64,000 nt of DNA. Origin: Eutreptiella sp. 'Long Island Sound 2002'. Lineage: Eukaryota > Protista > Euglenida. Positions 2,387 to 63,326 of the stretch are shown piece after piece. Both the position numbers and the translations under genes were made by a program. Under the pieces are notes generated by a model. The model was not told the DNA's origin and did no database searches. It saw only the letters and a list, made by a program, of their open reading frames with translations. Location: contig OZ038378.1 in NCBI GenBank assembly GCA_964036045.1, positions 187,550,001-187,614,000 on the forward strand. The letters are read 5' to 3'. The stretch's first letter is position 1. The number at the start of each line of letters is the position of its first letter.

Positions 2387-3113
2387 GGGGGCGCCTTAAG
2401 CGCAGTGCGCGCAGTGCAACTATTTGGGCGTTTGGCCGTAGTAGAAGCCCATACTTTGTGGTACTTTGGGCATCATTGTTGTTTGGTAGTAGGTTTTGAT
2501 GCATTGGGGATCTGGCATTTTTGCATGCTCACCGTGTTTCACCCATTTCTACTTTTTTCCACACATTTTTTGCCCATTTCCACCACATCTACTCTTTTTC
2601 TCGGTTCATATGATATTGATATGGTGATACCCTTTGAGGGTGCCTGCTACAGGACATCATACTTCCCTCCTCATTTCTCAGGCCCATTTTCTCCATGGAT
2701 CTCGGTATTGGGGATAAGGTGTTCTACACCCGCTCCAATGGCCTGCAACCTCCTACCACGGTGGTTGGGACGGTTGAAGACGGACTCCTCCACTTGGAAT
2801 GCTACCAAGATGGGTTGAGAGTGGTGAATCAGCAATGCAAGATGGAGTCCATCTCCTTTGCCATCCCAAGTTCAGACTCGCCACCTGATTGCCCTCCATC
2901 TCCGCTGCCCAACACATAGTCAAGTTTCCCCCCAAAGGCCGCCGGTCCTTCACCATGCTACAAGAACCGGGAAGGTCCCCCTCAAGGTCCCCTCTAGTCC
3001 AATTTGGGTCGCCTAATTCTAAGGGTGTTTCCAAGGGGCGTGCCTAGGGGCTCTTCGGGGGGAACATAGTCTAAAAGTAGCGCGCAGTGCGCGCGCAATG
3101 CAAGGATTCCCCC
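2387..3113 (+). mobile_element. Family A non-autonomous TIR element, copy 1 (3-bp TSD, PIF/Harbinger-like)
   Basis: Ends GGGGG...CCCCC flanked by TTG/TTG; subterminal GCGCAGTGCGCGCAGTGC at both ends in direct orientation; end sequences shared with 28038-28833 and 59749-60416. Confidence 0.85.
2695..2919 (+). pseudogene. Truncated Tudor/SH3-like mini-ORF carried by element A1
   Basis: MDLGIGDKVFYTRSNGLQPPTTVVGTVEDGLLHLECYQDGLRVVNQQCKMESISF is clearly homologous to the N-terminus of the 62073-62639 ORF; preceded by CTCATTTCTCAG (AG at 2680-81). Confidence 0.6.
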
Positions 3114-3810
3114 TTGCGGTCGACTGCCCCCAGTGTGGGGGTGGCTCCCCCTGAGCCAGGAGGCGGCCGCCCTAAAACTGGCAGGCAGCTGACCCCATAA
3201 CCGGTAGCTGGCCACCTTTTTAACCAAGAAGAGACCCTCGGTGAGCAATGCGTACCAGATTTTCGAGTACAAGATGATCATGAGCCAATTGCATTGCGTG
3301 ATTAGGTGATTGTGAGCGGGTATGACCCATGAGGGTATGGCTTTGAGGTTGTTAAACCTTTGGATCTCTTTGCCTCCTACATCCATGACTTTGTAGCGGC
3401 GAGAGGCCTGCAGACGCACAACTCCATGAGTGGGAGTGTTGTGACCCATTAGTCCAACCTCAGGGCAAGAGACACCGTCCCGTTTCTTCAATGAGCACAT
3501 TGGACAGCAAATGCCATTTCGCACAGTGCCACGGTTTGACCTTACAAATATTCTAGACCGCGAACCCCAACAAGCAATGGGTGTTGACAATCAGGGCTTG
3601 ACCCTAAAGCAAGGCAAATATCGAGGTGAATCGCCCCTGGGCAGGGCGAATAATCGTTATGGGGTCAGCTGCGCAATGAATCCTCCCCAAGCCAGGGCGA
3701 CTATTGGTATATGGTCGGCTGCCGGTACAAATATCGTTATGGGGTCGGCCACCTGCCTGGGTACGGCGGCGGCCACCCACACGCACAGTTACGGCGTTGA
3801 TCGCCCGCCG

Positions 3811-4168
3811 GTTTGACCAGAGGGGAACGACCATGCAAGCACATAGGCAAACCAAAAAGCGAGAGGAACAGCACATCAATATGCAGTCCTGGCCGACGTC
3901 ATTGGTTGCAAGTAGCAAGAATTGCCATGAAAACCCACCTGGGGTGGGTGGGGGGGGCTGTGTTCTGCCAGATAAAATTTCAGACCGACAAAAAGGGGGA
4001 GAGCATATGCGACACACACACGTGCACACACAGAGGCTGTGTGCTGCATGGGTCAAACTTCGGTTTGCTAATGGCAAACATCAGTTTGACCAAAGGGGAG
4101 AAACCATGCAAGCACACAGGCAAACCAAAAAGCAAGAGGAACAATACGTCAATATGCAGTTTTGGCCC
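3811..4168 (+). repeat. 84-bp direct repeat pair (3811-3894 and 4085-4168)
   Basis: GTTTGACCA(G/A)AGGGGA...CCATGCAAGCACA(T/C)AGGCAAACCAAAAAGC...AATATGCAGT occurs twice, about 274 bp apart. Confidence 0.8.
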
Positions 4169-4767
4169 GCAAAAGATTCAGCACCCGACTGCATGATATG
4201 TCCCCCGCGCCCCCCAGCATGCCCAAAAACACGCCAGGGGACAAGCAACATGCAAAGGGTCAAATCTGTCCAAGCAGCAAAAATCAAAACTGTTGTGGCC
4301 TTCGTACCTGCAGCCCGAGGCGGCGCTATGCGTCCAGTTGGGCAGTGCTGGTATCCCCATGAAAAACAGAAAAAAAATCTGCTGAAAGGGTCGGCCGGGT
4401 TAAATTCACCTAGGACACAACAGAGATAAACCGGAGGAGGAGTGCAAATGACGGTACACACGCCAAAGGATGCAGTTTTGCACACGCAATCCCAGACTGG
4501 CTTTCCCCGCCACATAAGACTGCCGCACTACAAAACTATCAACGACCAGGAAAACATGATTCCAGCCCAAGGCCTCAATGAACATTACTGAAAACTCCAA
4601 GGCTCAGAACCCCACAGCCTGCTAATTGAGCCCAGAATTGGGCAAAAAGCAGAAAAAGATTCCCATGCCCACCCTCCACAAAGCCTCCCTTCAGACCGAG
4701 CCATATCGCGCCCCGTCAAAAAACACATAGGTGCCCCAATCACATCGGCGCTTCAGCAGCAGCAGGG

Positions 4768-4900
4768 ACCATTTACACAGGCCCCAAGGGAGGAGATGCA
4801 ATAAATGTATGGGGGTGTCATGCTGGTAGTACCATTTACACAGGCCCCAAGGGAGGAGGCCCACCAACACATGCACCAACACATGTATGGGGGCGTCATG
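4768..4900 (+). repeat. ~62-bp tandem duplication
   Basis: CCATTTACACAGGCCCCAAGGGAGGAG and GTATGGGGG(T/C)GTCATGC each occur twice. Confidence 0.7.
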
Positions 4901-7271
4901 CAGCCACTGCGGTGACCACAGTATGTGAACCCAAACACGCGCCATGAAGGGAAGTACCCCCTAGCTTGGGCACACATACTACAGCAAACGCCCCCCAAAA
5001 CAAAACAAGTGTTTGCGCTTGCCGCATGCCAACTGAAAGCAACGTGCAATGAGCGCGGACCAGTTGCTCTTCACCATGCTGACCTTGCCTGTCCGTCATT
5101 GCTTGTCCAACCTCAAGAGCCTCATGACGACATTAATGAGTTGGAGCTCCCAGTGCTGGAGCTTGACGACTCCATGGTGACTGTGGAGTCCCACCCGGAT
5201 ATTCGCCCTGGCCTCGGGCGAATCTAGCCGGAATCGAGGGGGGGCACGCGGATTCTTGAACGCTCAACCCAGGCACCTTGTTTGCTGTGGTGTTGTGGCG
5301 AACATAATCATGATGCACGTCACTCCTGGGGCACAGGAGGTCGTATTTACAAAAAATCTGTGTGGCCAAAGTCAAGATGTTGACCTGAGCACTTGCATGT
5401 GGGCAACATGTAGCGCAGTTGACCATTGAGGTAGTTTTTGGCCTGCCAACTCCTCACTCGTTTTGCTTCAGTTTGCCGTTCACAATGGCGGCCCTTGACT
5501 TGGAAAGTTCTCTTGAGCGCGCAGATTTCTTTGGCATTGTGGGCGCCCCCTCGAGGCTTTCGAAGTCATCCTCGGTGTTGTCAAAGATTCCGCAAAAGCC
5601 TTCTCCAAGTGTGACACCCAGGCCAAAGGTTGCACGTCCTCGGCCACCAAAGCTCAAGAACAAGGGTATGCAAACTGGTAGAGGTTTGGGGCACAATGCA
5701 CACTTTTGTGTGGTTGTGTGGGCGTCCCTTCTGCTGGGGGTCTACCTGTGTTCCAGTGCAATCCCCGCGCTTCGTGCGCTCGCCAAGATTGCATAGGTGT
5801 ATCACATGGCGGCCGCATCCCCCCACCGAAATAACGGCGTCCATAGATGAGCATGCAAAAAAAATTGTGGCACGACCTTTGCACTATCCTAAGACTGCCA
5901 ACGAAGCGTCGTGCGGGGGGTGTCGGACACGAGCGGTGGGGTGGTATCCCCGTTGAGAGTGGAGCAGGGGGGTGGGGGGGGGGGGGGGGCAGGGGGTTTG
6001 AGAGGGGTGGGGGGAGTCCATGCGCTGTCTCATGTGACGAAACGGGCTCGCCACTGGGGACTTCCTTCCCACAGAAAGGTACCTTTGGATACCTATGCCA
6101 CTGACGAGTGTTGTTTCTGTTTGTCTTGTTGCTGCTCTTCTGTACCCTTCCCGAATGGGGTCCAGGGTTTTCCAGATATTTTCACGGAGGACAGCCCCTT
6201 CAGGACAGCCCCTTGTCCCAGTCGGTTACCTGCCAACCGCCCGCTGGTGCCCAACAAAAATGGCCAAGTTCTTGTTGACTATGCACCGACTGTGGGTGCA
6301 GGTTCACATTTATGAAGGTTCACATGTACCCTCTCTCTTTGCCAATGACAAACATCATTGGCAATGATCTGAAACGGTGTAATGCTCTGGTTGCCTTCTC
6401 CGATGGCGGGGTGCGCGTTTGTTGGGTCGCGCGTAAATCAACGAGATTTTTTTTCGGGAGTTGAGGACAGCCCTGACTCTTTGGGGCAGGTAAGGGTGCA
6501 GTGAAGGACCACGGCACATTTCCACTTCCCTGGGTGCACTGCCGCCCCTCCAGGAGTGATTGGTGAATTGAGGCCCAATTCTGGGGTGCCCTAGGCTTTG
6601 TGGTGTGGGGAGTCCTCCCCACTTTAGAGGGGCTGTGCTGCGCCTCTAGCGGACGTTGGCTGTACTTCCATTTTGTCCACACAGGCATCACGTTCAGCAA
6701 GATGGTGGGAAGGGAGGCCAGCATCTGTGGGCAGCCTCTTATGGCGGGTCTTGCCTCACTTCATCTGGACTCGCCTCTGGATCGAAATGCTCTGGATCAA
6801 GTCTACCAACGACTCCACAAACGATCCCCAGCCACGGACTTCTCTAAGAGTTCTCCGCGTGCTCCCGCGAGAAAGGTATGCTCTGTCTCCTCTGGAGGTG
6901 AGGGAGGTGGAGGTGGTGTGTAAGGACTGCTGCTTGGCAAGAGCCCGACCACTGTCTAGACCACGTAAAAACCAACAGCCAGCAGCAGTGTATGTCCGTA
7001 CGCGCGCGCTCGCACGTGTGTGTTGAATACCCTTTGAACTCTTCCATAGAACGAAAGACGCCTGGGGCTGCTCTCCGGCTCCTGGGCGCTGTCCAACAAA
7101 TCTCTCCACCTTCGTGCCTCTCGAAACCAAATGTGCTTTTCATTTGCTAAAGTTGATGCAACGTGTCCTGTGCTAGGACAGAAATATCTGAAGACTGCCT
7201 CAACTACTCGGTGCACAATCCATGCCTACCCATTTGCACATGTTCGCCTTGCTGGTGACGCTGCTCACGCC

Positions 7272-17142: not shown

Positions 17143-18331
17143 CCCCCCCCCCCCCCTTCAACAAACTCCCACCCCTTGCAATCCCCCCCCCCCTGGGGAG
17201 ACCGTCACTTCCATGTTTTTCTAGTTAACATGTATTGTGCTGGTTTGTGTTGCCCATCTGCTTTACGCATGGCCTTGTATTGCTTTCCCATTACTTCAAA
17301 TCAAGCACCTGTGTGTGTTCCATGATATTTTCTCTCCAAAAGCGTTGTATGGGTGTGTTGTGTTGCTACTTCAAACCCAAGATGTTTTCTCCCGGTGACC
17401 ATTTACGGTACCACTCCCGCACACTTGGTGCACATGTGTTGGCCACTGTCGTGGGCCCTTCACCAAATGGGCCACAGTTTTGCCACATTCAGTGCCTCCA
17501 AAGAAGTCGGTGGCTGCCCCCAAGGCAAGAGCAAAGGCTGCCCCCCAGCCAAGAGCAAAGCCAGCCGCCAAACGGGCTGGTCTGGCTGTGCCAAACCAGC
17601 TCTGCGCGCCATTGCCTCCTCCTCATCAGCCACTGCAACACACCCCGTGCCTGTCATGCAAATTGAGCATGTGCAACAGTTCAAAGTGTGTTATTCTCGT
17701 AAGTAGAAGTTCTTTACCGTTCCTTTGGATCCTCAATAACATTTGTGTTGGATGAAACACATTGGCATTTATGCACTATTTGACGGGAAGTACACCAGCA
17801 AAGCCCAACGAGAAGGTAAAAGATGTGCATGACTGCTATTTTGCAAGGGTGGTAGAATATTTCACGCGCTTTTCTTACTACCCCCCCCCCCCTTTGCAAA
17901 CTCCCCCCCCTTGCTATCCCCCCCCCCACCCGGGAGACCGTCACTTCCATGTTTTTCTAGTTAACATGTATTGTGCTGGTTTGTGTTGCCCATCTGCTTT
18001 ACACCTGCTTTGCAACACACCACGTGCCTGTCAGGCAAATTGAGCATGTGCAACAGTTCAAAGTGTGTTATTCTCGTACCCAGAAGTTCTTTACCGTTCC
18101 TTTGGATCCTCAATAACATTTGTGTTGGATAAAGCACATTGGCATCAACGCGAAAGTCGCTTCACACGTGTTCTCTTTGCTTGCATTAGTGGAGGGTACC
18201 ACAGTTTGCCTTGAAATACCCTTGCAATCCCCCCCCCCCCCCCGGGAGACTGTCACTTGGCGACCGTCTCCCCCCCCCCACCCGGGAGACCGTCACGCGC
18301 TAACCCGGGAGTTTGCAAGGGGGGCGGGGGG
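17143..18331 (+). mobile_element. Family F compound element: cargo-bearing copy (17143-17880) followed by a complete short MITE (17881-18331)
   Basis: TA|CnTTTGCAAACTCCC...GGGAGTTTGCAAG Gn|TA for the short copy; blocks 17180-17330 and 17630-17790 are duplicated in it. Confidence 0.8.
17382..17590 (+). pseudogene. Frameshifted Tudor-like + Lys/Ala/Pro-rich mini-ORF carried by element F
   Basis: MFSPGDHLRYHSRTLGAHVLATVVGPSPNGPQFCHIQ, then in another frame VPPKKSVAAPKARAKAAPQPRAKPAAKR; AG immediately before the ATG. Confidence 0.5.
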
Positions 18332-23700: not shown

Positions 23701-26700
23701 CAGCTCCGATATTTTGCCAAACTCCCCCCCCCCCCTTGCGCAAGCACCGCCTTGTCTAAGCACCAGGACCCGGTCTGACCGTCACTTTTACCGAATTTTC
23801 TGACCACGGCTTTTACGGGCAGAAAGTAGGCAAAGCGTGATTGTGTGCCGATTGTAGATGGAAAGAGGTGCTGTTTCATGCTTGTGATGAGGCCTCCTGC
23901 TCATAGCAACATTGTGCTCGTTACTGCACCCCACTGCTCTTTGTTTTGGTGTGATTTTCAGCCATGACTACTGTCGGTACCCCTGGCTTGGCTGGTTGGT
24001 GCTTGTGCAAGGGGGGGGGGGGGGGGGTATTGGAAGAGGCAAGCACAAAGTGTACTGCAATCCAAGTTGTCATCAAACCGGAGGCAAATACATCCATGCC
24101 CACATGGTGGCTTTTTTATCTCATATGAGAGGTCCCCGCTTCTGAAAGCGACTTTCGGCGAACTGGCTGCAACGATATGGCTAACGAACAGCAGTTGCTG
24201 GTCAAAATACATTTTCTTGACTTAATTGCGTGATTGAATCCGGCAATTTATTGTTATATGCGTTGTGTTGGGCAGGGGGCAGGACATTGGGCTCGCAGGA
24301 AGTGCGGCGCGTGGCACATACATCCCTCCGGGCGTCGCCGGAAGCGCACGCCCTCTTTGACGACATTGCAGACTGTCCTTCGTCCAATGCACAAATTGGA
24401 GTTGTTGCAAAGTGTGCATGCAAGGTTTGCATAGTTGGGCTACCTGCATCACATGTGCTGTTGATATGGCTGTTGTTCAGATATGGCAGCACACTGTGGC
24501 AGAAGTACATTGAACGGCATGAGGTGTCGCCTGAGGTCCTGGAAGTCGTCGTGGACAACACATACTTCGACAAGCAATCCACAGGGCTGCCGTACGTTGG
24601 CACATTGTACTCAGCGGCAATGGCTCATTCAGAAGCCATGAGAGCGAACCCGATGGGATACACGGAAAGGTTTCTTTTGCCAAAATTGAACAGGTATTGG
24701 ATCTCTGAGTGAGGGCATGGAGACGCAGATTGGGACCGCAACCCAGACCTGTGCCTGAATGGGAGAAATTGGTGGCGCGTCTCAAGACCCAATCTAGTCG
24801 CTGGAAAAGTGGTTGAGGGCAAATTGTGGCGGTTACAAAACGGTTGGACGGCGCCTGGAAGGCGCTTCAGAGAGCTGTGCGCATGCTGTGCGCACATTTC
24901 GTATCGCACTGCACCATAGAACCATACTTCATGGTATTTGGGGGCTATGGGATTGCCGCTTCACCAAAACGGCGGTGCGTTCAACATCAGTGGCCTCCTT
25001 TCCAAATTTTGGCACTTTGCGCCTACAACACGCTGACAGTGTCCACAATTAGCAGACCGCGTCTACTTGGGGTAGAGACTACAGACCTCAACTCCTATGG
25101 TCCATCGGTAAACAGGAGGGGTGCACAGGTGAATAGAGTGGCGTGCGGTGTAAAATGTGCTTATTCTTGCATATTATATATTAGGGGCCTTCGGCCCCAC
25201 ATGGGGCACTGCGCACCCACCCTTGGGGGGGCCGAATGTGCAAAAGTGCCCAGTGCCCCGGGCACCACCCAACTGCGAGTGGGACAACCCGACAGCCACA
25301 ATGGGATGCAGGGAGCGACATGCTACCCCCCCCGGCGCCGCACACCAGAAGCAGTGAGCATGCCAGCAGAAAAAGAAAGAGCCCGAAACTGGGAGGAACA
25401 CAAGCAGCACAACAACTGGGCACAGGGCCGCCCCACACACGGCAGTGAGATGAGCCCCAACAGGACACACAACAAGACACAAGGGAACCATGAGGTGCGA
25501 GCACTGCAGCAACCACCAAATGCGGCGCACGCAGAGCGAGCCATCAGCAAACACCCTCCCTCCCTCTACAAGGTGCCCACGTACTCCACAAGGGCGGGGG
25601 CTGCGCCCCGCGCACCGGGAGGTGCCCGCCACGGGGGTGGCAACAGGGCCGTGAACAGCCAACCGCGCATGGGACAGTCCACGTCGTACGGAGATGTGAA
25701 ATCCTCGTACGGGGGGGGGGGGCAGGCAGGGGGGACAGGAGGGGGTGCGCGACATGGGCACCCAGGAGCGCCACCAGACAGGGGGAGGAGCAACACAGAC
25801 ACACAGAACGCGGGAGCCACACCAAGAGGGACAAGGGCGAGCACAGCAGACAGGAGGAGGGGCACAGCAAGGCAGGAGAGGCAACCAGAACAGCGGGAAC
25901 AGGGAACCAGAATGGAGCGGATGGTGGAGCGTGCACATGGGAGGCAGCAACAATAAAGGGGATGGCTTGGCCAGCCAGCCCCATCGCTACCGGGTGCCAG
26001 GGCAACCCCTGCTCAACCGGCATCAGGTGGGGGGTGTCTCCCGCAGCCCAGATGGGCTGTTTGCGCAACAGGAGCGGGAGCCCATCAGGGGCAGACCAGC
26101 CGTTAGGGGGAAAAGGACATATGGTGGACGGCCCGGACAGCGCGTGGAGGAACAGGGCACCTGGGCCTCACAGAAACACAGCAAGGCAGGCTATGGACGG
26201 CCTGTGGACAGAGGTGTATGGACAGCAAAAACAGTCAAACGACCCCGGCAACAACCAGCACATCCTCAATACGCCAATTATTGGGCGCCGCTGACGCGCA
26301 AACGGCACACCATGCCACATTCAGCACAGCCCCAACACACCAACTACTGGGCTCCGCGAATGCGGAAACGACACCAGCAAGAGCACCGGCCGCAGCGGCC
26401 GACAGAAAGCAGCGACCTGATGCAACATGCGAAGGGAAGAACGGGTGACCGTCCAGGGCCCCGTAAACACGGGGGGGCGGCCGGGCCCGGTCCTTGTATG
26501 CGACACCCCCCAGCCCCCCCGGTTTTGAAAGATAGTGGTGCCGGGTCGGCCACCAACAAGTGTCCCTAGAGAAAACTGTCCGGCGCCGAAGGCACCAATT
26601 TTTTTGTCATACTATGTGTTTATACTCAAAATACTCAAAATTTTGTACAGAATTCATATTTGTGTTAAAACAACAAGAAAAAATTTTGACATGAAGGAGG

Positions 26701-27829
26701 GCTACAGGAGGGCTACAGACCCTGGCAGCAACCCTAGCCCTAACCCTTGCCCTATGCCCTAACAGTAGCCCTAACCCTAGCCCTAACCCTAGCCCTAACC
26801 CTAATCAAGACTGAATATTGGGACCGAGCTGGTGGGGGAGGGAACATTAGATATGAATGGTGAGGGACATCAAGAATGATTCACACATTGATGGCTCTTG
26901 ACAAAGTGAAATGCACCTGAACCCCATCACCACGAGGCCCACTTTCAAGGCTTTTTGGACTTCTCAGGGGCCAAAATGCCCCAAAATGGGCTCAAAATGG
27001 GCTCATTTCACCCTTTTGTGCACCCCAAATGGTCTACGATGAGTTTTGGAAAAATGTGTTTTTGACCCATTTTTGACCCATTTTTGGTCCCAAAACAGCC
27101 CATTTTCAAGGCATTTTGGGATTTTTGGGAGGACCCAAATGGGCCACCACAAGCTCAAAACAGTCCAAAAACACTTGTTTTAGCGTCGCACATGGTCTAG
27201 GATCATTTTTGCGGAAAGTCATATTTTTACCCCTTTCGGACCCTGTTGACCCATTTGGGTACCCACCTGTTTGGGCTTGAGCTTGCAGCTTGCCGCAGCC
27301 TAGTGGGCCTAGGTATTGGGGTGTAGGCGTCCGTTTGGGCAAATCTGAGGGGTGGAAACCACAAAACGTGGGGGGTTGCGGGTGGAGTAGGTGCCCTCGG
27401 AATCGCATTTTGAGCCATGTAGCCAAAGATATGGCCTATTCTTGGTTTGTGGCTGTCGGCATTTGGAGCTTTTGGGGGCCTTTTTGGGCCGCTTCCGCGG
27501 CATATCATGGAGTTAGAGGGCCGCAAAGAGCTCGTTGACACGGGGAAGTCAAGCGGCACGTGGAGTGTACCCACCGTTTCCCTTCGTTTGGCCGTTTTGA
27601 ATGTGTTCCAAGGCTTTTTTGGCCCAAAAATGGCTGTTTTTGGCCCTAAACTGCAGTTTTTGAAACTGAGGTCCGCCACTTGCGGATCCCGTTCCCGGCC
27701 GCCACCGTTGAGTTTCTTGCTCAAACTTTGTGTGATTGTACTTCACACCCATAGGTATCATCCACCAAAATTTCACCCGAATCTGAAGCACCACGACGGA
27801 GTTGTGATTTTTAGCCATTTCGCGCGTGC

Positions 27830-27864
<35 letters not shown>

Positions 27865-30026
27865 GCTGCTAAACCTGGTAGGTCCACCCTAGACACTAAA
27901 AAGGGTTATAAAACCAAGACTGGTTCCACCAGCTCGGTGACCCTAACCCTAATCAAGACTGAATATTGGGACCGAGCTGGTGGGGGAGGGAACATCAGCT
28001 ATGACTGGTGAGGGACATCGAGAATGATTCACACATTGGGGGAATCTTTGCACTGCGCGCGCACTGCGCGCTACTTTTAGACTATGTTCCCCCGGAAGAG
28101 CCCCCAAGCACACCCCTTGGAAACGCCCTTAGAATTAGGTGACCCAAACTGCCCCAGCTCAAGAAAGATGCAAACCACCTTCCCTGAACATAACACACAT
28201 CATGCACATCTGGAAAGGCCATGCACAGCGCATTGGTCGCCACCCTCAAGAACACACAACTGTCTTTCTGGTCCATTGTCAACTAAGTACACATTGAGAA
28301 TACGCAACTTGTGTGCACAACATGACACAGTTGCAGAATCAAAGAAATGTCACACTGTCACATGTGTGCGTGTCTATGCAATCCGTACAATATTGCAATT
28401 CACACTTGTCACACATGGACATCTTTTCAGGGTCAAACTTGGTGCAACAAAGGGCACAAACATCCCCATCATCACCCACAACATCCTCATCATCATTGTC
28501 CTCCTGTGTAGGTGCGGTCCATACATGTGCAGGTACGTGTTCCCACGGACCATATGGAGGGTACCGTACCTGTCTTCGAATCAAAAATTGCTGCAAATGC
28601 AAGAGTACACGCACGTACTCATGCAACTCCGTACCGGATCCCCTCCATATGCTACGTCATCCCTGCATTCTCGGGGGTCCCCAAAAGAAGGGGAACAAAA
28701 TCAGAAGTCAAAACCTACGCTAGGGGTCACCATGATGCCCCTAGGGGCCCCTAGTATCACAAAGTATGGGTCTCTAGTACGGCCAGACGCCCAAATAGTT
28801 GCACTGCACACGCACTGCGCTTAAGGCTCCCCCATTGATGGCTCTTGACAAAGTGAAATCACCTTGCAAGTGAACCCCATCACCACGAGGCCCACTTTCA
28901 AGGCTTTTTGGACTTCTCAGGGGCCAAAATGCCCCAAAATGGGCTCCAAATGGGCTCATTTCACCTGTTTGTGCACCCCAAATGGTCTACGATGAGTTTT
29001 GGAAAAATGTGTTTTTGACCCATTTCTGACCCATTTTTGGTCCCAAAACAGCCCATTTTCAAGGCATTTTGGGATTTTCGGAGGACCAAAATGAGCCACC
29101 ACAAGCTTAAAACGGTCCAAAAACACTTGTTTTAGCGTCGCACGTGGTCTAGGATCATTTTTGAGAAAAATCATCTTTTTGCCCCTACTGGATGGACCCT
29201 GTTGACCCATTTGGGCACCCACCTGTTTGGAGCTTGCAGCTTGCCGCAGCCTAGTGGGCCTAGGTATTGGGGTGTAGGCGTCCGTTGGGGCAATTCAGAA
29301 GGGTGGAAACCACAAAAAGTGGGGGGTTGTGGGTGGAGTAGGTGCCCTCGGAATCGCATTTTGAGCCATGTAGCCAAAGATATGGCCTATTCTTGGTTTG
29401 TGGCTGTCGGCATTTGGAGTTTCCGGGGGCCTTTTTGGGCCGTTTCCGGGACATATCATGGAGTTAGAGGGCCGCAAAGAGCTCGTTGACACAGGGAAGT
29501 CAAGCCGCACGTGGAGTGTACCCACCGTTTCCCTTCGTTTGGCCGTTTTGAATGTGTTCCAAGGCTTTTTTGGCCCAAAAATGGCTGTTTTTGGCCCTAA
29601 ACTGCAGTTTTTGAAACTGAGGTCCGCCACTTGCGGATCCCGTTCCCGGCCGCCACCGTTGAGTTTCTTGCTCAAACTTTGTGTGATTGTACTTCACACC
29701 CATAGGTATCATCCACCAAAATTTCACCCGAATGTGAAGCACCACGACGGAGTTGTGATTTTTAGCCATTTCGCGCGTGCTGCTTGCTGCTTGCTGCTTG
29801 CTGCTGCTGCTGCTGCTGCTGCTAAACCTGGTAGGTCCACCCTAGACACTAAAAAGGGTTATAAAACCAAGACTGGTTCCACCAGCTCGGTGACCCTAAC
29901 CCTAACCCCCCCCCCTTCACCCCTGGCTGGACGCCCCCCCTGACCCCGGCCAGACCCCCCCCCCGACCCCCGGCAGGAACCCCCCCCCCGACCCCCGGCT
30001 GGACCCCCCCCCCCCCCCCCCCCCCA

Positions 30027-30057
<31 letters not shown>

Positions 30058-33000
30058 AACTGCCCCCCCCCCCCCACAAGTTTTGACAGATAGCTGGGGG
30101 GTATGTCGCATCAGGACCGGTTGTAGTCGCCCCCCGTGCCCGTAAAGGAGCAACAACCAGACGGAATGTCACACAGGGGGGGCGAGTTCGTATATGCTGG
30201 AGGGATATATGTTGGGCTACCCATACCCCCCCCCTCAACATCACCTCTGAGGCATATGAACCTTTTTGGAACAGCAGAGGTCCTGAAAGTGTTCTCAAAG
30301 CCCCCCTTTCCCCTCCTTCCCCCCACCTCTCCTCCAGGATGATGGAAATGGAGGAACCAGAGGAGCCAGAGGAGCTCTGGGACAGCGAGGCAGAAGGGGC
30401 AGGTGGTGATGGGTCGCCGGACAGTGACAGTGATGACGCGGACAGTGACGAGGAGCACTTGCTCAAATGGAGGAGCTAATTGAGGGCAGCATAGTGAGTA
30501 AATGCATCCAGCAGTGCGTGTGTTTTCAGTTCGTCATTGCAAAGAGTTGCCTAGTTTGCAGTTGTGTTCCAATGAGTTGCTGAAAGCAGGCCTGTTCACC
30601 ACGTCCAATCACTGGCTGTGGTGTCGCTGGTGCTTCGGTGCATGGTGATTGATTCATTGCTCCCCTCCACAAATGAATTGCCCCCCGACCCATGACCCAT
30701 GGGAAAGGGCCGATAGACCCCGAGGTGGAGGATTCGAACCTGAGGTTTGACACCGGTACTTGGAAACACGCCTCGTCGTGCACGTGTTGGCGAATGGTCC
30801 TTGGAGATCGGATGCATTCCCAGAAACTCCCACCACGAGGGGGCGGATGGCGATGAGACGAGAGCGTTCCTGCTCCTCCCTCACCCGAAACGAGTGGTGC
30901 ATGCCCAGTCGTGCAGTGTAATGTGGCAGACGCCGGCAGGTCTGATGGCTTTTTCTGCAGTTATCTTCTCGAGAACAACCAAGACCCTGTTGCACCGAAG
31001 ACATACGTTGAGTACATTACAAAGTGCATCTCCTGCAATTATCTGCCTCGATTGGACGTGCAATGGACACCCGAAAGGTGCGTGAAAAGAGCTGTGCACC
31101 TGTAGACCCCCACGTCGGGAGGCATCGACCACAGTGAGGCTGGCACTAGTGGGGGACAGTGTTAAGACGGCAAAAAGGGCCCGGGGCTAAGGTGTACTGG
31201 AAACAAGTCGCCACTACAGGACGGACATCGCCGCGGTGTCAATACATGTCACAAAAGCACTGCGATGTGAGTACAGCTGTGATGGGCCACAAGAGCGCAG
31301 TTGATCATTGATGGGCAGGTCACGCGAATGACAGGCACGGGACACCGAACGTCCTACACCGTACCTATCCAGCCTTCATGGAGCTGGAGCCCCAAGTCTC
31401 CCCCAGGGGCCGACACATCAGGCCTTGAATGAAAAAATCAAATTTGTCACTGCAGAAAGCTTTTTTTGGGGCCATATTTGGGACATGATTTCTTGCTTCT
31501 GGATCTCAGAGCCCCCACCCCACGCCTCTGCCCCTCCACCAGGTCTGCCCAGCCTCATTGGCAGTACCGTGCAAATTCTAAAGATTTGCGAAAATAATTA
31601 ATTCCTGGCACAAGGTGTTGTTGTCCGCAAAAAAAAGAAACGCAAAAAAAATTAATTATTGGATTCATGCCTTACGCAAAAATGGGTTCCGCGAAAAAAA
31701 TCGCAAAAATAAAATAATTTTTGCCCCTGCCCCCCTTTTTGCAAGAATGCCAGAATTGCGCTCCAGAAAATGGGAGTGCTGCCAGGGCATGCGAACCTGC
31801 TATTGCAGCGTGCTCGCAAACCCTCTGATGCGCAGCCAGCCCCAAAGCAACCGAAGGCCAGTTCTGCCCCGAAGCCTGCCCCAAAGGCAGTGGGATTTTT
31901 CGCGGGGAGGAGTGTTTTGTACACTTGTGGCAACGGGGCAACGGTTCGGGCCAAGGCGGTGAAAAATCATGGGAATGGCAAATATGATATCCAGTTCCAA
32001 CAGGATGGCAATGATGTGGTCCGCCTTTCTGTGCCTAGGGCCAAATTGCGAATTGCATAGGTGACCTTTTGTGTGTTCATCGTATTTCTCTTTCACAGCC
32101 GTGTACAGTGCTGTGGTTTTCTTGTTGTCTGATCCTGCAGACTTTTCTGTGGCATATTTTCAGCATTTCATGCACAAAAGGAATCAACCCCAATCCCCAA
32201 AATGCAAAAAAAAACCGCAAAAAATTTTTAATTTTTGGTCCAACACCCTACGCAAGAATAGGTTCCGCGGAAAAAAAAATCGCAAAAAAAAGATTTTTTT
32301 GCCGATTTTTGCCCATTTTGGATGCTGCCGCAAAATTTTTGCTTATTATTAATTCAAAACACCCAACCCAAAATTAGGATTCCGCGAAACTTTAGGATTC
32401 GCACGGTACTTACTCTGACCCAACCCTTCCGGCCCCCGCCCTCTCCCAACACCCTCCCCATGCCTCTCTTGAGCAGAACTACCAAGCCTCCATTAGACTC
32501 CTGAGGTGCAGCAGACCCTCTGGGACTCTGGCCCTAGTGCAGCCATGGCTACTGCTGTTCCGAGTCTGAGTGCGCCACATTGGAATCCCATGTCTGTTTC
32601 TTTGGGACTGCACCAGGGCGACAACAGGCCTTTTCACAAGCACAGACTGCCGCTTTCTGCAGCTAAGATCCCTCCCCGACTGTGTTCTGGCCACGGATGC
32701 ATACACCATTGACGGAATTGTTTTGGTGATTGCCCGGGTGGCAGGGGGTCGGAGCCCGATCACCAAATGCCGCGCCCCTGTTCGAGCATCCCTGCCTCTA
32801 CCCTTCCTTGTGTGCAGTACCCACCAGCCCGGTGTTCCGCTTGTGTGCAGGGGCTGGGGGCTGTTTGCCGCAGAGGAGTTGCTGCTGTTCGATTTCCTCG
32901 GGGTGTACACTGGACGGTTGCATTTCCTGGACGACATTCCTACGGAAGAGAGGCTGAAGAACGCGTACCTCTGCACCTTCCCTGCGAAGGAGAAAGGGTT

Positions 33001-33226
33001 GGTTGCCAACGCAGAGTCGCACGGGAACTACACCCGCTTCGTCAACCATGACGAGACGCACAACATTTTCTGTATTCACCTGAACATTAACAAAGTGCCG
33101 TATATGGCGCTGGTGTCATCTGGGTGCTCAGCTGGGGCAGAGATATTGTGGAACTACGGTCAGAATTACAACAAGAATTGGGAGGGGGTGGATGAGGCAG
33201 ATGGGATTGAGGAGGGCAGCGGTTGA
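20400..33226 (+). CDS. SET-domain protein lysine methyltransferase, join(20400-20711,22487-22572,24481-24693,30961-31077,32851-33226), 367 aa
   Basis: All four introns are GT-AG with matching phases (0,2,2,2). Spliced product reads ...LPRLDVQWTPER|GWGLFAAEELLLFDFLGVYTG...ANAESHGNYTRFVNH...EILWNYG, i.e. the SET GxG, RFxNH and ELxxxYG motifs; no post-SET cysteines. Confidence 0.85.
20469..20624 (+). repeat. 39-bp coding tandem repeat x4 (EKQQTE[C/G]EPSGTK)
   Basis: Alternating TGC/GGC variants give a 78-bp higher-order unit; in frame with exon 1. Confidence 0.9.
22487..22572 (+). CDS. SET gene exon 2
   Basis: TTGTTTTCCTTTTCAG|VSLPHVQKRLTINGKCRSLQEMMTTVNTK|GTATGT; phase 0 in, phase 2 out. Confidence 0.75.
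23724..24027 (+). mobile_element. Family D MITE, copy 1 (in SET intron 2)
   Basis: TIR CnTTGCGCAAGCACC / GGTGCTTGTGCAAGGn; homologous to 51459-51725; contains TTTTCAG|CCATG and a truncated ORF start at 23964. Confidence 0.85.
24481..24693 (+). CDS. SET gene exon 3
   Basis: TGTTGTTCAG|YGSTLWQKYIERHEVSPEV...FLLPKLN|GTATTG; 213 nt, phase 2/2. Confidence 0.8.
26735..26804 (+). repeat. Degenerate interstitial telomeric (CCCTAA/CCCTAG)n
   Basis: About 10 CCCTAA/CCCTAG units directly abutting the 1.14-kb element. Confidence 0.85.
26805..27940 (-). mobile_element. Telomere-repeat-inserted non-coding element, unit 1 (1136 bp)
   Basis: Flanked on both sides by CCCTAA; near-identical second unit follows after (CCCTAA)2; 13-bp asymmetric inverted repeat ACCGAGCTGGTGG (26823-35 / 27926-38). 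Strand is arbitrary (TTAGGG strand). Confidence 0.75.
28038..28833 (-). mobile_element. Family A element, copy 2
   Basis: ATT|GGGGG...CCCCC|ATT; the paralogous empty site CACACATTGATGGCTC at 26882-26897 has a single ATT. Confidence 0.92.
28339..28503 (-). pseudogene. PHD/zinc-finger-like exon carried by element A2
   Basis: CAG|EDNDDEDVVGDDGDVCALCCTKFDPEKMSMCDKCELQYCTDCIDTHTCDSVTFL*, with Cx2C..Cx2Cx4Cx2C..HxC spacing; upstream 66-nt GT-AG intron (28504-28569) and 21-nt mini-exon. Confidence 0.55.
29906..30076 (+). repeat. C-rich tract with ~31-bp GACCCCCCCCCGACCCCCGGC units and long C runs (G-quadruplex-prone on the minus strand)
   Basis: Direct reading; follows the last CCCTAA. Confidence 0.8.
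30338..30479 (+). CDS. Candidate alternative terminal exon (acidic) within SET intron 3
   Basis: 36-nt pyrimidine tract + CAG, phase 2 as in intron 3; MMEMEEPEEPEELWDSEAEG...DSDSDDADSDEEHLLKWRS*. Confidence 0.35.
30961..31077 (+). CDS. SET gene exon 4
   Basis: TTTTTCTGCAG|YLLENNQDPVAPKTYVEYITKCISCNYLPRLDVQWTPER|GTGCGT; 117 nt, phase 2/2; supplies the first SET beta-strand. Confidence 0.88.
31567..32406 (+). mobile_element. TA-flanked non-autonomous TIR element (Tc1/mariner/pogo-like) in SET intron 4
   Basis: TA|CCGTGC...GCACGG|TA; 27-bp TIR with 22/27 identity; ~105-bp A-rich internal direct repeats (31621-31730, 32200-32305). Confidence 0.88.
31770..32060 (+). CDS. 96-aa cargo ORF: Lys/Pro/Ala linker + Tudor/SH3-barrel-like domain
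   Basis: Intact ATG-to-stop; PAPKQPKASSAPKPAPK then FFAGRSVLYTCGNGATVRAKAVKNHGNGKYDIQFQQDG; pyrimidine tract and CAG 3 nt before the ATG. Confidence 0.5.
   Translation: MGVLPGHANLLLQRARKPSDAQPAPKQPKASSAPKPAPKAVGFFAGRSVLYTCGNGATVRAKAVKNHGNGKYDIQFQQDGNDVVRLSVPRAKLRIA
32851..33226 (+). CDS. SET gene exon 5 (catalytic core)
   Basis: TTGTGTGCAG|GWGLFAAEE...GNYTRFVNH...AGAEILWNYG...*. Confidence 0.92.
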
Positions 33227-33267
33227 CCAGGCACAGGCAACGAGAAGTCTGGCAATACCTGGGAAGA

Positions 33268-48786: not shown

Positions 48787-48788
<2 letters not shown>

Positions 48789-51458: not shown

Positions 51459-52263
51459 CCCCCCCCCCCCTTGCGCAAGCACTGCCTTGTCTAAGCACAT
51501 GAGCCCGTGTTACCGTCGTTTTGATGGAATTTTCTGACCACGGTTTTTATGGTCAGAAATGTAACATTATGCGATTGTGCTTCGCTTGTAGAGGGAAAGG
51601 GGGGCTTGATCATGCTTGTGGTAGTTCCTCCTGCTCATACCAACATTCTGCTTGCAATTGCAACCCAATGATGTCCCTGTTGATGTGATTTTCAGCCATG
51701 GCTCATGTTGCTACGCCTGGCATGGCTGTTACGTACATCCCGTCCACCGGTGAACATGTCTCCGCAACAATCATTGGTCCGTGGGCTTGTCTAAGCATGG
51801 GAGCCCGTGTTACCGTCGTTTTGATGACTTTCAGGGTGCTTGCTATGGCCCCGGTACTCTACCCCACCCTCCGTGGGGGAGTGGCCCCCTAACCCCTTTA
51901 CCTTTCCCTCTCTTCGCGGAGCACAGCGTCTCTGCACGGAATTGCCTGGCATGGCCCGACAGGGCCAGGGATGGGTTCGTGACCCCCATGCACGACACTC
52001 CACCATGCTGTACAGCATGCAGGAGGGTGCTCTGTCTTCCAACAGCGCGGAGGGGCTCATGAAGCATGGGCGGGCCTCACGTGAGGCAACCTAAAGGACG
52101 GAGGGGGGAGCCTCTTGTCATACAGGGCGGCAGCTCTCCAGAAACCCGCGCGACTTGCCCCTTGGGTGAGTTTGGGGGCTGGAATGGGTAGAAGCCCCAT
52201 GGACTATTGCTCCTTAATATGATTTCCTTCCTTTCAGGGTGCTTGCGCAAGGGGGGGCGGGGG
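51459..52263 (+). mobile_element. Family D element, cargo-bearing copy 2 (TA TSD)
   Basis: TA|CnTTGCGCAAGCAC...GTGCTTGCGCAAGGn|TA. Confidence 0.85.
51698..51781 (+). pseudogene. Truncated Tudor-like mini-ORF in element D2
   Basis: TTTTCAG|CC|ATG AHVATPGMAVTYIPSTGEHVSATIIGP aligns with PGDHLRYHSRTLGAHVLATVVGP at 17382. Confidence 0.5.
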
Positions 52264-53756: not shown

Positions 53757-55523
53757 GCTTCAAGCGGTATCCCTGATATGCGCTTGTGGGCAGATGTTTG
53801 ACTGAGGAAAGCTTTGTGTCCCTGGTCAACCAGGCTGTGGTTTCAATGAATTACCTCTCATTCCTTATAAGTTGAGTGGCCTCACAGCGTGACAGCTGTT
53901 GCTGTTCTTGATGACGCATATGCCTCAGACGGGGCAAATGGTACTGCTCCAGCAATATGTTCATACTGTACGGGGCGCAGGGGGGACGCCATGTTGCACT
54001 CAAGCTGCCTATGCTTGAGTGTTCTGGGAGTGTTCCCCTTAACTTTCTGGTTTCTCAAACTTGCTCGAACACCTCGAAAATCAGCCATCAAAACTAAGAC
54101 TGGGTGCTGCATATTCCTTGGGCTTACGTGCCTTGTTACGCCATTTCGATTCACATCGAAGCAATAATTATCAAATTACAAAACACATCCGCCCTGTTGA
54201 GTGCAGGCGCCCCTGGCATTAAGGCGTGTACAGACCATGCCTGAAACAAATCTTCATTGCCGTTCATCGCAAATGCTAAGCTCCACTCTCTGCGCCTGCC
54301 TTTGCACCAGAAGCCATATGCTCTCAGGGGCTTTGATCAGTGTGATGCTTTAATGACTCCACGTTGCTTTTTGGTTGCCGAGGAGGGGCGCTGAGGGGAG
54401 CTGGGGGCCTTTCATGTGCCCCATGCCTGCTCCATTGCATCACGTGCTCGCATGCTTTGCTGCAGCATGCTGCCGTGGGTGGCCATTTGCTGGTGCGCAA
54501 GGTGGGCATCAGCCATGAGTGGGTTAGGCAAATTGCAGGGCATTCCCAGGTTACAGCACCTCAGAATCCCCTGTAATGATCCGTACCTGCGCCCCTTCCC
54601 TTCCGAGTGCACTACATATGCATGTGTGCACGTACGAGGGTGTGGCGTGATGCCCAGCAGTGGTTGAACAATGCGACCTCTTTTCATCAATGGTTCATGT
54701 CTTGCACCCTGTCCTACGTTCACGTGGTGCATAGCCTCCCAGAATATATCTTGGCCCATCAACAAGGCCTCTCATTTGGTGACGCAACAGCTGTCGCCCT
54801 GATATGCCTCCCATTTGACCTCTTATGTGTAGGACATGTTGCATTCACTTCAAGTTGTCCGTTATTGGTGTACATATTGGTGTACATAAGCTGACCCAGC
54901 TGATGCATTAGACCAAGCAGGTAGTGAACAGAGACAGCTCCCCAGGTAAAGCTGGAACACATGCCAAATGTGGAGCCCTCGTTTGTACTATATGCCCTAC
55001 TTCTTGAACCAGGCGGTTGCCTGAGAGCTCACATTACACTCTTTGAACTTGTTGAGCCTGAGCAAAAAAAAAGATGCATTTGACAAAGTGGTTTTCTGCT
55101 TGGTCACGGATGTTTTCCGGTTTATGCAGGGTTCTGCATCTCAAATGTGCACTGTACCAGCAAAGTATGGACGTTTTCAGGGCACAAGGATGTGCACAAC
55201 CAACTGCATGGAACTAGAGATATGATCACGTGCGCATCATCATTGCACACTTTTTGCCATAGAGATGTGTCATCAAATTTTAAGGTCTGGTGTGTGAAGC
55301 ATTCCAACTGGTGTTTCACCACTCTCACTGTCGGATGGCACTAATAACTAAAACCAGCTTGGAGGCTTCATGGCAATATGAATGTGCATTATGCAGAATA
55401 CACAGTTTTTTTTTTTACACAATTTTAGCCATGGATTTTGATCAAAAACGCAAAAGTGACAGTTTGCCGAACGCCCCGTGGAGGCTGCACAAAGGGGGGT
55501 GTGGTGTGTGTGTGTGTCACTAA

Positions 55524-59462: not shown

Positions 59463-59748
59463 CTACTTTCTTCTGTTCTTTTTTTTTAGTCTTGGCCTCA
59501 TTGGGTTGAATGGGGTTGTGCTTGTGTTATAGCAGATTCTTGTTGTGTTATGGTGCAGCAGCTTCATGAACTGAGAGGACGTTGGCTGGAATTGCCTAGG
59601 CGGGGACATCTACCGTAGTATCTGTGAGTTGCAAGTCAGGCTGAGCAAGGTATTGTGATGCATGTATATTGTGGACCCCATGGTGTAGTGAGTTTGAAGG
59701 TACGACGTGCCATGTGGGATGTTCACGTTTAGGGCGAAACCTGATCCC

Positions 59749-60416
59749 GGGGGAGCCTTAAGCGCAGTGCGCGCGCAAAGCAACTATTTGGGTGTCTGGC
59801 CTTACTAGAGACCCATACTTTGAGATACCAGGGGCCCCTAGGGGCGTCATGGTGACCCCTAGCGGAGGTTTTGGATTCTGATTTTGTCCCCCTTTGTTTG
59901 GGGATCCCCGAGAATGCAGGGGTGACGTAGCATTTCCCCCCTCTTTTGGGCCCCAACCTTCCTTGATCTTCCGCGATCGCATCGAGCACGCGCAAGTCTG
60001 CAGATGTTAATATGAAACATCGTCATGTGAAGGAACTGTTCAATCGAGTTATGTAAGATACTTCGATGTCTTTTGAACAGGGTTTATCTTTGGATTGTGG
60101 AATTGGTTTCGAATTGGTGCCCCGCCTAAAGATCCTGCGAGAGGTTGTTGAGTTTTGGGAAAACGAGACGATTTTCAAGAGAGAAACGACAATGGAACAG
60201 AAAGACAGTTGTGTGTTGTTGAGGGTGGCAACCAATGCGCTGTTCATGGCTTTTCCAGTTGTGCATGATGTGTGTTATGTGAAGGGAAGGTAGTTTGCAA
60301 CTTTCTTGAGCTGGGGCAGTTTGGGTCACCTAATTCTAAGGGTGTTTCCAAGGGGTGTGCTTGGGGGCTCTTCGGGGGGAACATCGTCTAAAAGTCGCGC
60401 GCAGTGCAAAGATCCC
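59749..60416 (+). mobile_element. Family A element, copy 3
   Basis: First ~190 bp and last ~240 bp match A2; right terminus degenerate (GCAAAGATCCCACC); different central segment. Confidence 0.8.
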
Positions 60417-61195
60417 ACCTCAATATGTCTACACATTGTACGTGTAGGCCTTAGCTGTAGAACATGTACAGAACACCCCAAATGAAAGCTGCCACACAAT
60501 GCATTCTGATGGAACACGGTGGAATATGTATCTTAACTCACGGATACACATGAATGTTGCTGTCTGATAGGTCTACTACTGAGTGAATGCATGAATGTGG
60601 GGATTAGAATCCGATTAGTCGGCTGGGGGATCATCCAGAAAACCCTCCTGAGCTAGCCAGTCAAGCACGGGTTGTGTGACCACAATACACATTGAACTAA
60701 ACCCAAGTGCTCGTGTGAGTAGTATGTGGGCCTTTGTGACACGCGGCCTCATTGGCAAGAAGACCTTGGGGCAGGCTTCTTTGTGAGCAGGTTGTGGTGA
60801 GAAGTTATTCCCCCTTTTGCATATGTCAAACACCCGTGTGTTGGGTGCAGTGCCCGCGTCTTGGGTGCAGAAGACCTGCAGCTGATGTGAATATGGAAAC
60901 ATGTCGTATTTTGGACCGTTAGGCAGCAGTTACATCTAACATGGAGGGAGCATTAGAAGCGGCGCGCGAGTGCACAATCATCAGGGTGACTGGCAGCAGC
61001 CCAGCAGAAGTGAAAAGAGCATAATGGGAAGTGTGTGTTGCATGGTTTTGTGTCGGTGTGTGTAGGGGGGTATAGCGTCCTCAAAATTGTGTGTGCCAAC
61101 AGCCAGAGCTGTCAGGCGTGGCGCTCACCAGAGTGCATATGCGGAGGTGGGGTATTCTACCCCCCCCCCTTGTCTAGGATAAACTCCGCACCACC

Positions 61196-61810
61196 GTGGA
61201 TGACCGATACACAGTATGCCCCTGGCGTAAAAGACAAGACGTGTGGCGCCTTGTAAAACAACTCCTACACAAAGCAAGCTTCACAGCTTACGCAACAAGT
61301 ACAGAAAGTCCATTTTTGATGCTCAGGAAATTGCAGCCCAAATTTCGCCCCTTTGGCAGACGACTGTGCAATCGGACTATGCAATATGAGGAGGGTGCAT
61401 TTGTGGAAAAATGCAAGTCATATCTCGAAGAAAATTTTCAAAGAAAAAATATTTCTTTAATGGCGAAGATGCCGATCAAACCTCTCTCACTTGAATTTGT
61501 GGAAGCTGCTTTGGAGGGATGGAATCACCGCTGCTGTGTATGTTACCTTTCGTGAATTCTTTGCACCACTTGTGTTGGAACTCTTTCAAAATATTTTACA
61601 GACAGGGAGATTAAATCAGTACTAGTCAGAGGCAATGCTAAACCCCATACCTAAGGCATTCGGTGCATGGGGGTAGAGGACTTGAAGCCTCTAATCCTAC
61701 AAAGCGTCTGCCACAAGTGGGCGGTTGCCATTGTGGTGCTCCAACTACCAGATCTTATCTATGCCATTACACCGCCACAGCAGCGTGGCTTCATTAAGGG
61801 TAGATACATA
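61196..61810 (+). pseudogene. Decayed non-LTR retrotransposon reverse-transcriptase fragment
   Basis: VEDLKPLILQSVCHKWAVAIVVLQLPDLIYAITPPQQRGFIKGRYI matches the LINE RT N-terminal pattern (RPIxL..K......Q.GF..GR.I), preceded by PLSLEFVEAAL; in-frame stops; cut off by a family B end. Confidence 0.65.
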
Positions 61811-62072
61811 GGGGGCGTACTGTGCGCTGTGCGCGCGCTGTGCGAAAAGTAGGCCATTCTCCACCACCGGTAGGCAGTTTTTTGGGTGTAGGATTGCCGC
61901 AGGGTACTATTGCCGTTGTGTGTCCTTGTAGCATCAACCTTCCCCCTTCTTGCATGTATGTACCCTTGCAAACGGGCACCCTGAGGCCGGTATATGGTGA
62001 TACATTCTCAGGGTGTTTGCTGCAGGGCATCATCTTTTGCTCTCATTTCTCAGACCCTCTATTGCATTCCCC

Positions 62073-62639
62073 ATGGACTTTAATGTTGGAGATAGGGTGT
62101 TCCACACTCGCTCCAATGGGATGCGAGTTCCTGCCACAGTGGTGGGGTTTGCGCCCGACGGCTTACTCCACTTGGAGTATTTCCAAGACGCGGTGAAGGT
62201 GGTGAATCGGCAGTGCAAAGTTGAGTCTATCTCCTTTGCCAGCCCGAGTGCCGACTCACCGCCCCCCTCCACACGCAGCCCTTCGCCCCCACCCGACGAT
62301 CGGGGAAGGAGTCCATCAAAATCGGCAACTCCATCACCCCGTGCAAAGCCGCGCGCCCCCAAGACTACAAAACGGTCTCGGGAGGCTGGTAAGCAGCTCG
62401 CTGCCACCATGAAGACCTTGAAGGGTGGGCTGAGTTCGGTAAGTTCGGAAGATTGGAAGGAAGTTCTTGAATGGCTGCTGAAGCGGAAGGAGGACACGGG
62501 CAAGATGAAGTGGGATGACGCCGCTTGGCATTTCTTACCACGATGGGGAATTGCTGACAGCAACGACCCACAGTGGGATGCCTGGCGGCGTCTATTTCAA
62601 ACAACCGCAACACATAAGTACCGGTATGTTGCTGTTTGA
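62073..62639 (+). CDS. 188-aa element-borne ORF: Tudor/SH3-like N-domain, Ser/Pro/Lys linker, Trp-spaced Myb/SANT-like C-domain
   Basis: Intact ORF; MDFNVGDRVFHTRSNGMRVPATVVGFAPDGLLHLEY...; EDWKEVLEWLLKRKEDTGKMKWDDAAWHFLPRWG...QWDAWRRLF; CTCATTTCTCAG 19 nt upstream of the ATG. Confidence 0.6.
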   Translation: MDFNVGDRVFHTRSNGMRVPATVVGFAPDGLLHLEYFQDAVKVVNRQCKVESISFASPSADSPPPSTRSPSPPPDDRGRSPSKSATPSPRAKPRAPKTTKRSREAGKQLAATMKTLKGGLSSVSSEDWKEVLEWLLKRKEDTGKMKWDDAAWHFLPRWGIADSNDPQWDAWRRLFQTTATHKYRYVAV

Positions 62640-62853
62640 TGCTTTCCATGGGTCCCAGGGTCCTGAATTCTGCACCTTGCAACCCCTGCTGGTACACCAG
62701 GAATTTTTTTTTTTGGTCTGATGCTTGCCATGGGTCCCAGAGTCCTGAATTCTGCACCCTGCAGCCCCTGCTGGTACACCGGGAATTTTTTTTTTTTAGT
62801 CTGATGCTTCCCATGGGTCCCAGGGTCCTGAATTCTGCACCCTGCAACCCCTG
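62637..62853 (+). repeat. ~82-bp tandem repeat x2.6
   Basis: TGATGCTTnCCATGGGTCCCAG(G/A)GTCCTGAATTCTGCACC at 62637, 62719 and 62802; inverted homologues at 63129-63182 and 12203-12254. Confidence 0.85.
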
Positions 62854-63002
62854 TTTTGCATCTGATGCACCCATTCTGCCCTCTTTGTGCAGAGTGACGC
62901 AAAACGCGTTCAAGAAGGGTGGTTCCGCACGCATTGGGGCACATGCTCGTGCACCGGCCGAGGTCCACGGTGGTGGTAATCCTGAAGCTCCGGAGACCCT
63001 GT

Positions 63003-63326
63003 GGGGGCGTACCGTGCGCTGTGCGCGCGCTGTGCACGCACTGCGAAAAGTTGGCTGTTCTCCACCACCAGGGGTTCGGTAAGTTCAGAAGATTGAAAGG
63101 ACGTCATTGAATGGCTGCTGCAGTGGACGGGGCTATAGGGGGCAGAATTTAGGTCCCTGGGACCCATGGCAAGCATCAGATGTTTGAACTTTTGAGTTTT
63201 GAATTGATTGTGCATGATTCCGCAGGTGGGTGGTTTTCAGGGTTGTTACCTGGATAATCACCGTAATAATTGGCGCTGTGCGCGCGCTGTGCCCGCGCTG
63301 TGCGCCCGCTGTGCGAAAACGCCCCC
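63003..63326 (+). mobile_element. Family B minimal unit (324 bp)
   Basis: Nearly identical to 12097-12389. Confidence 0.88.

Follow-up and report, generated by a model that had tools for sequence, protein, structure and literature searches.

In Arabidopsis, the VANC proteins are anti-silencing proteins encoded by transposable elements (TEs); autonomous Mutator-like elements carry VANC as a gene of its own. Fusions of chromatin domains to TE enzymes are already known across eukaryotes, and the accessible part of one survey names Chromo and PHD domains on Gypsy, hAT and other elements, as well as SNF2 and SET (10.1101/2021.11.30.470311). For Gypsy-10_Ec32 of Ectocarpus, it has been stated that no TE with a Tudor domain had been reported earlier (PMC12477816, 2025). 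A Tudor-fold domain on DNA transposases was not found reported, and the literature on Tudor/Agenet domains with transposases and on Eutreptiella transposons showed no such arrangement, Repbase and most subscription papers lying outside the coverage. Here, a stretch of 64,000 nucleotides of Eutreptiella sp. 'Long Island Sound 2002' (contig OZ038378.1, positions 187,550,001 to 187,614,000; the window) is described, whose DNA is eukaryotic and TE-rich and in which five transposon copies carry coding remnants of a small Tudor-like barrel. A first-pass annotation had taken these for one mini-gene, a chromatin-reader cassette shared by unrelated-looking non-autonomous families. It is proposed instead, with a probability of about 0.85, that they are internally deleted copies of cut-and-paste elements, that the barrel was a terminal domain of the parental transposase, and that it acts as a tether rather than as a methyl-cage reader.

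With VANC, the barrel shares being TE-encoded and having a proposed chromatin role, but it is not a separate gene. As in Gypsy-10_Ec32, a Tudor-fold domain is fused to the end of the element's integrating enzyme; however, Gypsy-10_Ec32 is a long terminal repeat retrotransposon, whereas here the enzymes are DNA transposases of two superfamilies, the domain sits at either terminus, and it is cage-less. The Chromo and PHD fusions and the chromovirus integrase chromodomains likewise equip a TE enzyme with an accessory domain of Royal-family-like type as a proposed chromatin tether, but the readers in those fusions retain the methyl-binding cage, and no Tudor domain on Harbinger or pogo elements is named in the accessible part of the survey (10.1101/2021.11.30.470311).

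The five peptides were found at 2695 (family A), 17382 (family F), 31770 (an element with 27-bp terminal inverted repeats, TIRs), 51698 (family D) and 62073 (family B), all on the + strand, and their shared pattern gave five matches in the window against none in 200 shuffles. All five open reading frames (ORFs) sit inside TIR elements (A 2387-3113, F from 17143, the 27-bp-TIR element 31567-32406, D 51459-52263 and B from 61811), and the carriers span both the 3-bp and the TA target-site groups. The families are less unrelated than they had looked, since A and B are relatives with 74% DNA identity across the barrel, and D and F are likewise close (barrel z=15, plus a common C-terminal region); there are thus three lineages, not five. 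In a leave-one-lineage-out profile test, the held-out A/B, D, F and 27-bp-element barrels scored 40, 37, 34 and 16 bits, scores reached by 0, 0, 0 and 1 of 2000 shuffles each, respectively. The presence of a common Tudor/SH3-like domain across transposon superfamilies, as first annotated, is retained. A sixth candidate barrel at 54827 (- strand; 9 bits, E 0.47), from which the first strand is absent, was taken as chance.

The fold assignment also gains support, from AlphaFold (AF2) models of two lineages and from their structural matches. With a mixed alignment, the 62073 product was modelled as a five-strand barrel (pLDDT 84), and a second, independent model built from the 27-bp family only gave a SAM domain, a disordered linker and again a five-strand barrel, with pLDDT of about 84-90 over the barrel in the two models. 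The best structural neighbours of the 62073 model are a PWWP domain (Z 9.0), the PHF19 and MTF2 Tudor domains, NusG KOW and the LBR Tudor, and both models reach VIA Z of 8.0-9.0 to PWWP, PHF19, LBR and TDRD3, values that barely exceed the usual background for the SH3-like barrel fold. Foldseek ranks Tudor domains at the top, though none under E 0.001. Pfam searches of the five window ORFs gave no significant match, no curated Tudor/Agenet model was matched above its cut-off (best among 26 members SH3_12 E 0.0055, 53-BP1_Tudor E 0.024, Agenet E 0.22), and a sequence search of solved structures returned weak TDRD2 matches (E 0.15-0.5) together with TPR, lectin and Rrs1 matches attributed to chance. 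The domain is thus modelled as an uncatalogued Tudor/Agenet-like five-strand barrel of ~57 residues.

Families A and B share with the PHIS superfamily (PIF/Harbinger, Pangu, Nuwa and ISL2EU; PMC4482050) the DDE_Tnp_4 core, the 3-bp target duplication and the short TIRs. They differ from it in having one gene, with no second Myb/SANT ORF seen (including in the deleted copies L001 and L002), in target duplications of TTG/TTG, ATA/ATA and ATT/ATT where PIF/Harbinger proper has a strict TWA, and in the extra N-terminal barrel and C-terminal zinc finger. From the coding sequence, the A/B barrel is assigned as the N-terminal domain of a single-gene Harbinger-like (DDE_Tnp_4) transposase ending in this zinc finger. 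The homologue contigs looked up here are, all but one, in the Eutreptiella-like ENA long-contig assembly ERZ25074135. Among them, L001 holds a 3.36-kb B copy with an ATA/ATA duplication and one TIR pair, and L001 and L002 taken together yield the order barrel, Ser/Pro linker, helical segment, predicted phase-2 GT-AG intron, exon 2, catalytic region and zinc finger, each being interrupted by a differently placed stop, frameshift or deletion. The barrel and pieces of DDE_Tnp_4 are also found within a single ORF in three deletion products, P0265 (E 1.7e-5; 24.9 bits against a cut-off of 24.8), P0278 (E 0.0013) and P0011 (E 0.0045). Core or zinc-finger motifs occur in 26 of the 94 A/B matches, and the barrel is also present in 19 of those 26.

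The window retains the 5' part of a Harbinger-like family B element (61811-63002, + strand), 97% identical to the 3.36-kb copy. It includes transposase exon 1 (62073-62623), which encodes the barrel (62073-62243), a Ser/Pro/Lys-rich linker and a Trp-rich helical segment, followed by the predicted intron (62624-62892) and the first 36 codons of exon 2 (62893-63002), which is then cut by a barrel-less B-type miniature element of 324 bp (63003-63326, + strand). The 83-bp tandem repeats inside the intron (62637-62853) differ in number between copies, and their unit is also present, inverted, in B miniature elements. The possibility that 62073 encodes the Myb-type accessory protein of Harbinger elements was rejected, as it has no Myb match and runs through the intron into the transposase. 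The three family A copies in the window each retain another piece of the gene. The 727-bp non-autonomous, Harbinger-like element at 2387-3113 (+ strand; GGGGG termini, TTG/TTG) has the first 74 transposase codons (2695-2919), with the whole barrel (about 2695-2865) and the start of a Pro/Ser linker; the copy at 28038-28833 (- strand; ATT/AAT-strand 3-bp duplication) has in place of the barrel the C-terminus and zinc finger (28342-28656), 44% identical to those of B; and the barrel-less copy at 59749-60420 (+ strand) has an internal, middle piece. In another contig (L012:287-619; ERZ27267618), a coding piece with a D-x-x-H motif follows on from a barrel and 5' region of the A/B type; this may represent a transposase of a third type, or else the junction arose by chance.

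The 27-bp-TIR element shares with the pogo superfamily the TA duplication and the DDE_1 core, and it is assigned from these to pogo, with the barrel C-terminal behind a SAM domain. The window copy is a non-autonomous element of 840 bp (31567-32406, + strand; CCGTGC termini, TA/TA), with a parent copy in L004, and its 5' end is fused directly to the last part of the SAM domain. It retains about the last 100 codons of the transposase (31760-32060), comprising the SAM end, a Lys/Pro/Ala linker, the C-terminal barrel (31893-32057) and the natural stop. The ATG at 31770, first read as the start of a gene of its own, is an internal Met within the SAM domain, and longer relatives lengthen this frame upstream into SAM (E 5e-4). 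In L004 the SAM-barrel frame goes upstream about 110 further codons, across two stops, and a DDE_1 piece (atlas 0.96, with 196 features common with DDE_1 clusters; by Pfam, E 0.17-0.2 only) precedes a probable intron. This piece, with the frame running into SAM and barrel, places the barrel at the C-terminus of a pogo transposase.

Families D and F are TA-site elements with poly-C ends, in which the barrel is N-terminal. The D element in the window (51459-52263, + strand; non-autonomous, poly-C/poly-G termini, TA/TA) retains only the first 28 codons of its protein (51698-51781), with two barrel strands, the remaining ORF being the 3' subterminal repeat read as codons. The F composite (17143-18331, + strand) consists of a barrel-carrying copy from 17143 and a barrel-less 450-bp copy (17881-18331), TA/TA-flanked. 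The former has the first 37 codons (17382-17492), with three strands, after which a deletion at 17492/17493 links the barrel start out of frame to the C-terminal tail of the protein; the splice-acceptor AG upstream of 17382 is mutated. Consequently, neither 17382 nor 51698 is a whole domain, and of the three Lys/Pro/Ala segments listed with the five ORFs, the one given to 17382 belongs to another reading frame. Complete D and F barrels occur in copies outside the window. There, the barrel of the D protein is followed by a WW domain (E 8e-8), the PIP-like motif TLDKFF and a helix-turn-helix-like start (P0181, L006:8001-8777), and the F protein proceeds into a PIP-like motif, TLDAFL, at the same place. 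The helix-turn-helix-like start and the PIP-like motif are features in common with pogo, whose elements have PIP-boxes (PMC5371812), and one F copy (L009) has a short pogo-like piece, P-x-I-I-F-K-G, weakly matching the L004 core (p=0.04). The TA sites and these motifs suggest that D and F are of the pogo type. No catalytic domain was retrieved for D or F: neither family has a Pfam match, a BLASTP comparison of the pogo core with the internal piece of F gave nothing, and longer D/F copies were absent from two scans of metagenomes. Neither an N-terminal barrel with WW nor a C-terminal SAM with barrel was found described for pogo. D, F and a sister family also have a common C-terminal VWAK...GKLYF domain followed by a Lys/Pro/Ala tail (L007:8356, L011:8665, L001:13366, L009:9010; the tail also at window 17492-17740), and in this domain these proteins may have a further barrel of PWWP/Tudor-like type. 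An additional barrel lineage, on a 563-bp ENA contig (P0294), falls beside D/F in the tree.

The cassette proposed at first does not survive these comparisons. No separate complete ORF of the VANC kind was found, the barrel being colinear and in frame with the transposase in A/B and in the 27-bp element, and the D and F barrels read on into longer proteins. By their coding content, the copies in the window are what internal deletion has left of transposase genes whose product had the barrel as a terminal domain. The distance from the ATG to the 5' end is 237-308 bp in A, B, D and F, and from the stop to the 3' end it is 346 bp in the 27-bp element, so that the barrel pieces would outlast internal deletion by lying close to the element ends, which deletion spares. 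The breakpoints ignore domain borders, as 52 of 278 retrieved barrels terminate within the domain, although the searches favour whole ones. Of the five copies in the window, two break off within the domain and three are substituted at near-invariant sites (Ala21 and Tyr36 in A, Tyr11 in B, Arg13 in the 27-bp element). Several window miniature copies of D, F, B and related types have no barrel whatever. The barrel itself has a ratio of non-synonymous to synonymous substitution (dN/dS) of 0.07-0.42 between subfamilies, mostly 0.1-0.4, indicating purifying selection and hence a role for the domain while the elements were active. Among the closest copies, dN/dS is 0.66, or there are 0 synonymous and 2 non-synonymous changes, all small counts. 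The mini-genes themselves are ordinary deletion debris.

It is very improbable that the short derivatives make a small barrel protein, taken originally from the transposase, that selection now maintains for a role as decoy, inhibitor or anti-silencing factor. This would fit the start codons retained in A, B and D directly after a pyrimidine tract and acceptor AG, the repeated finding of in-frame barrel-plus-tail F derivatives (P0138, P0141, P0142, P0144), the two transcript-derived (Eutreptiella/MMETSP) proteins P0138 and P0160, which are barrel-bearing deletion derivatives, and the estuary metatranscriptome contigs that tile 61835-62408 in the B barrel region. However, these contigs are unstranded and cover non-coding miniature elements too, there is no synonymous excess between close copies, and the mid-domain cuts in the window and among the retrieved copies count against it. 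Some copies are likely transcribed, and one MMETSP relative is labelled taxid 73025, Eutreptiella gymnastica. As for what the domain did in the parental transposase, reader Tudor domains have a cage of 3-5 aromatics, in PHF20L1 Tudor2 W97, Y103 and F120, and the W97A/Y103A mutant loses binding (PMC13285377). In the barrel these positions are Arg13, Val19 and Tyr36, in a register taken from the PHF20L1 Tudor2 spacing and from the TDRD2 alignment, which sets Val on the cage Tyr, and not from model coordinates. Every lineage thus has other residues at two of the three aromatic cage sites, and the barrels have no Trp, which makes methyl-mark reading unlikely and leaves the suggested methyl-lysine/arginine reader unsupported. 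A true reader with a non-canonical pocket, aiming insertion at marked chromatin, is also improbable: PHF19, MTF2, LBR, TDRD3 and AGDP3 Tudor/Agenet readers are among the best structural neighbours and Tyr11 and Tyr36 are conserved, but non-readers (NusG KOW, ribosomal L21e, DNA-binding PWWP) reach equal Z, and the cage loss applies here as well.

The origin of the barrel bears on whether the five form one family. A profile search of 1.8 billion proteins gave 429 matches at E 0.001. Of the 150 best, about 140 are, judged by reading, pieces of these elements, and most others among those 150 consist of Agenet-like repeats in tandem, two such proteins having a dinoflagellate label. These dinoflagellate repeats (Prorocentrum CAK0893932.1, Breviolum) are the nearest sequence relatives outside the elements and share the G-D-x-V-x-Y ... 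A-x-V frame with the TE barrels; they differ in being tandem, in cellular proteins, and in having an invariant Trp, which is missing from the barrels of the elements. A 56-column tree separates the barrels of A/B and D/F from a group made up of the SAM-linked form and the dinoflagellate repeats (95/90), a split that fits two captures and an N-terminal module common to the Harbinger-like and TA-site lineages. The source of the barrel would be an Agenet-like domain of a protist, with probably two captures, one giving the N-terminal A/B and D/F form, moved between nested elements by recombination, and the other the SAM-linked C-terminal form. Nesting is frequent (F inside the sister element in L009, A inside F in L006) and offers a possible route for barrel exchange, in either direction. 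That the barrel of the 27-bp element is a look-alike from a separate Tudor-fold capture, the five not being one family, is a real if somewhat doubtful possibility. Its grouping in the tree, its position at the opposite protein end, its basic charge (the three other barrels are about neutral), its weak pairwise score to F (p=0.28) and its low held-out score speak for it; against it stand a score of z=6.3 to the B barrel and the Tyr-Thr-Arg-x-x-Gly motif and cage loss common to all.

For the transposase-domain reading preferred here, the barrel would be a tethering module on a long disordered linker from the transposase core. Its partner would be a chromatin protein of the host, the tail of an unmodified histone or, for the basic form, DNA, and the tethering would steer or stabilise the transpososome. 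It is rather unlikely, although conceivable, that the transposases of two superfamilies came by convergence, and by exchange with each other, to have a cage-less Tudor-like tether for one specific host chromatin factor or unmodified histone surface, directing insertion; short barrel-keeping derivatives could then compete with the tether. Several points weigh against the transposase-domain and tether reading. The ligand of the tether is a guess, the assignment of D and F to pogo leans on TA sites, motifs and the one weak match (p=0.04), and the tree has 56 columns, a midpoint root only and a long-branch warning. Stops, frameshifts or deletions interrupt all the long copies, so that none of those retrieved is both intact and autonomous. 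The family B intron is a prediction: no metatranscriptome contig covers 62560-62623 or 62880-62943 and no GT-AG joint is listed.

In this DNA, transposases from two superfamilies have a Tudor-fold domain at one end or the other; it is under purifying selection and occurs in hundreds of copies. Such recurrence suggests that a module for host tethering was selected repeatedly on cut-and-paste enzymes, about whose targeting less is understood than about the targeting of retroelements. The barrel is a small soluble domain open to testing, in a lineage with little-studied chromatin.

Elsewhere in the window, 24221-24900 (+ strand) has a coding-looking segment broken by stops, with no Pfam match. 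A telomere-like hexamer run (26732-26803) lies beside a duplicated 1.07-kb unit (26886-29905). Additionally, an ORF with a SET domain (PF00856, E 1e-8) is present at 32780-33226 (+ strand), immediately to the right of the pogo insertion.

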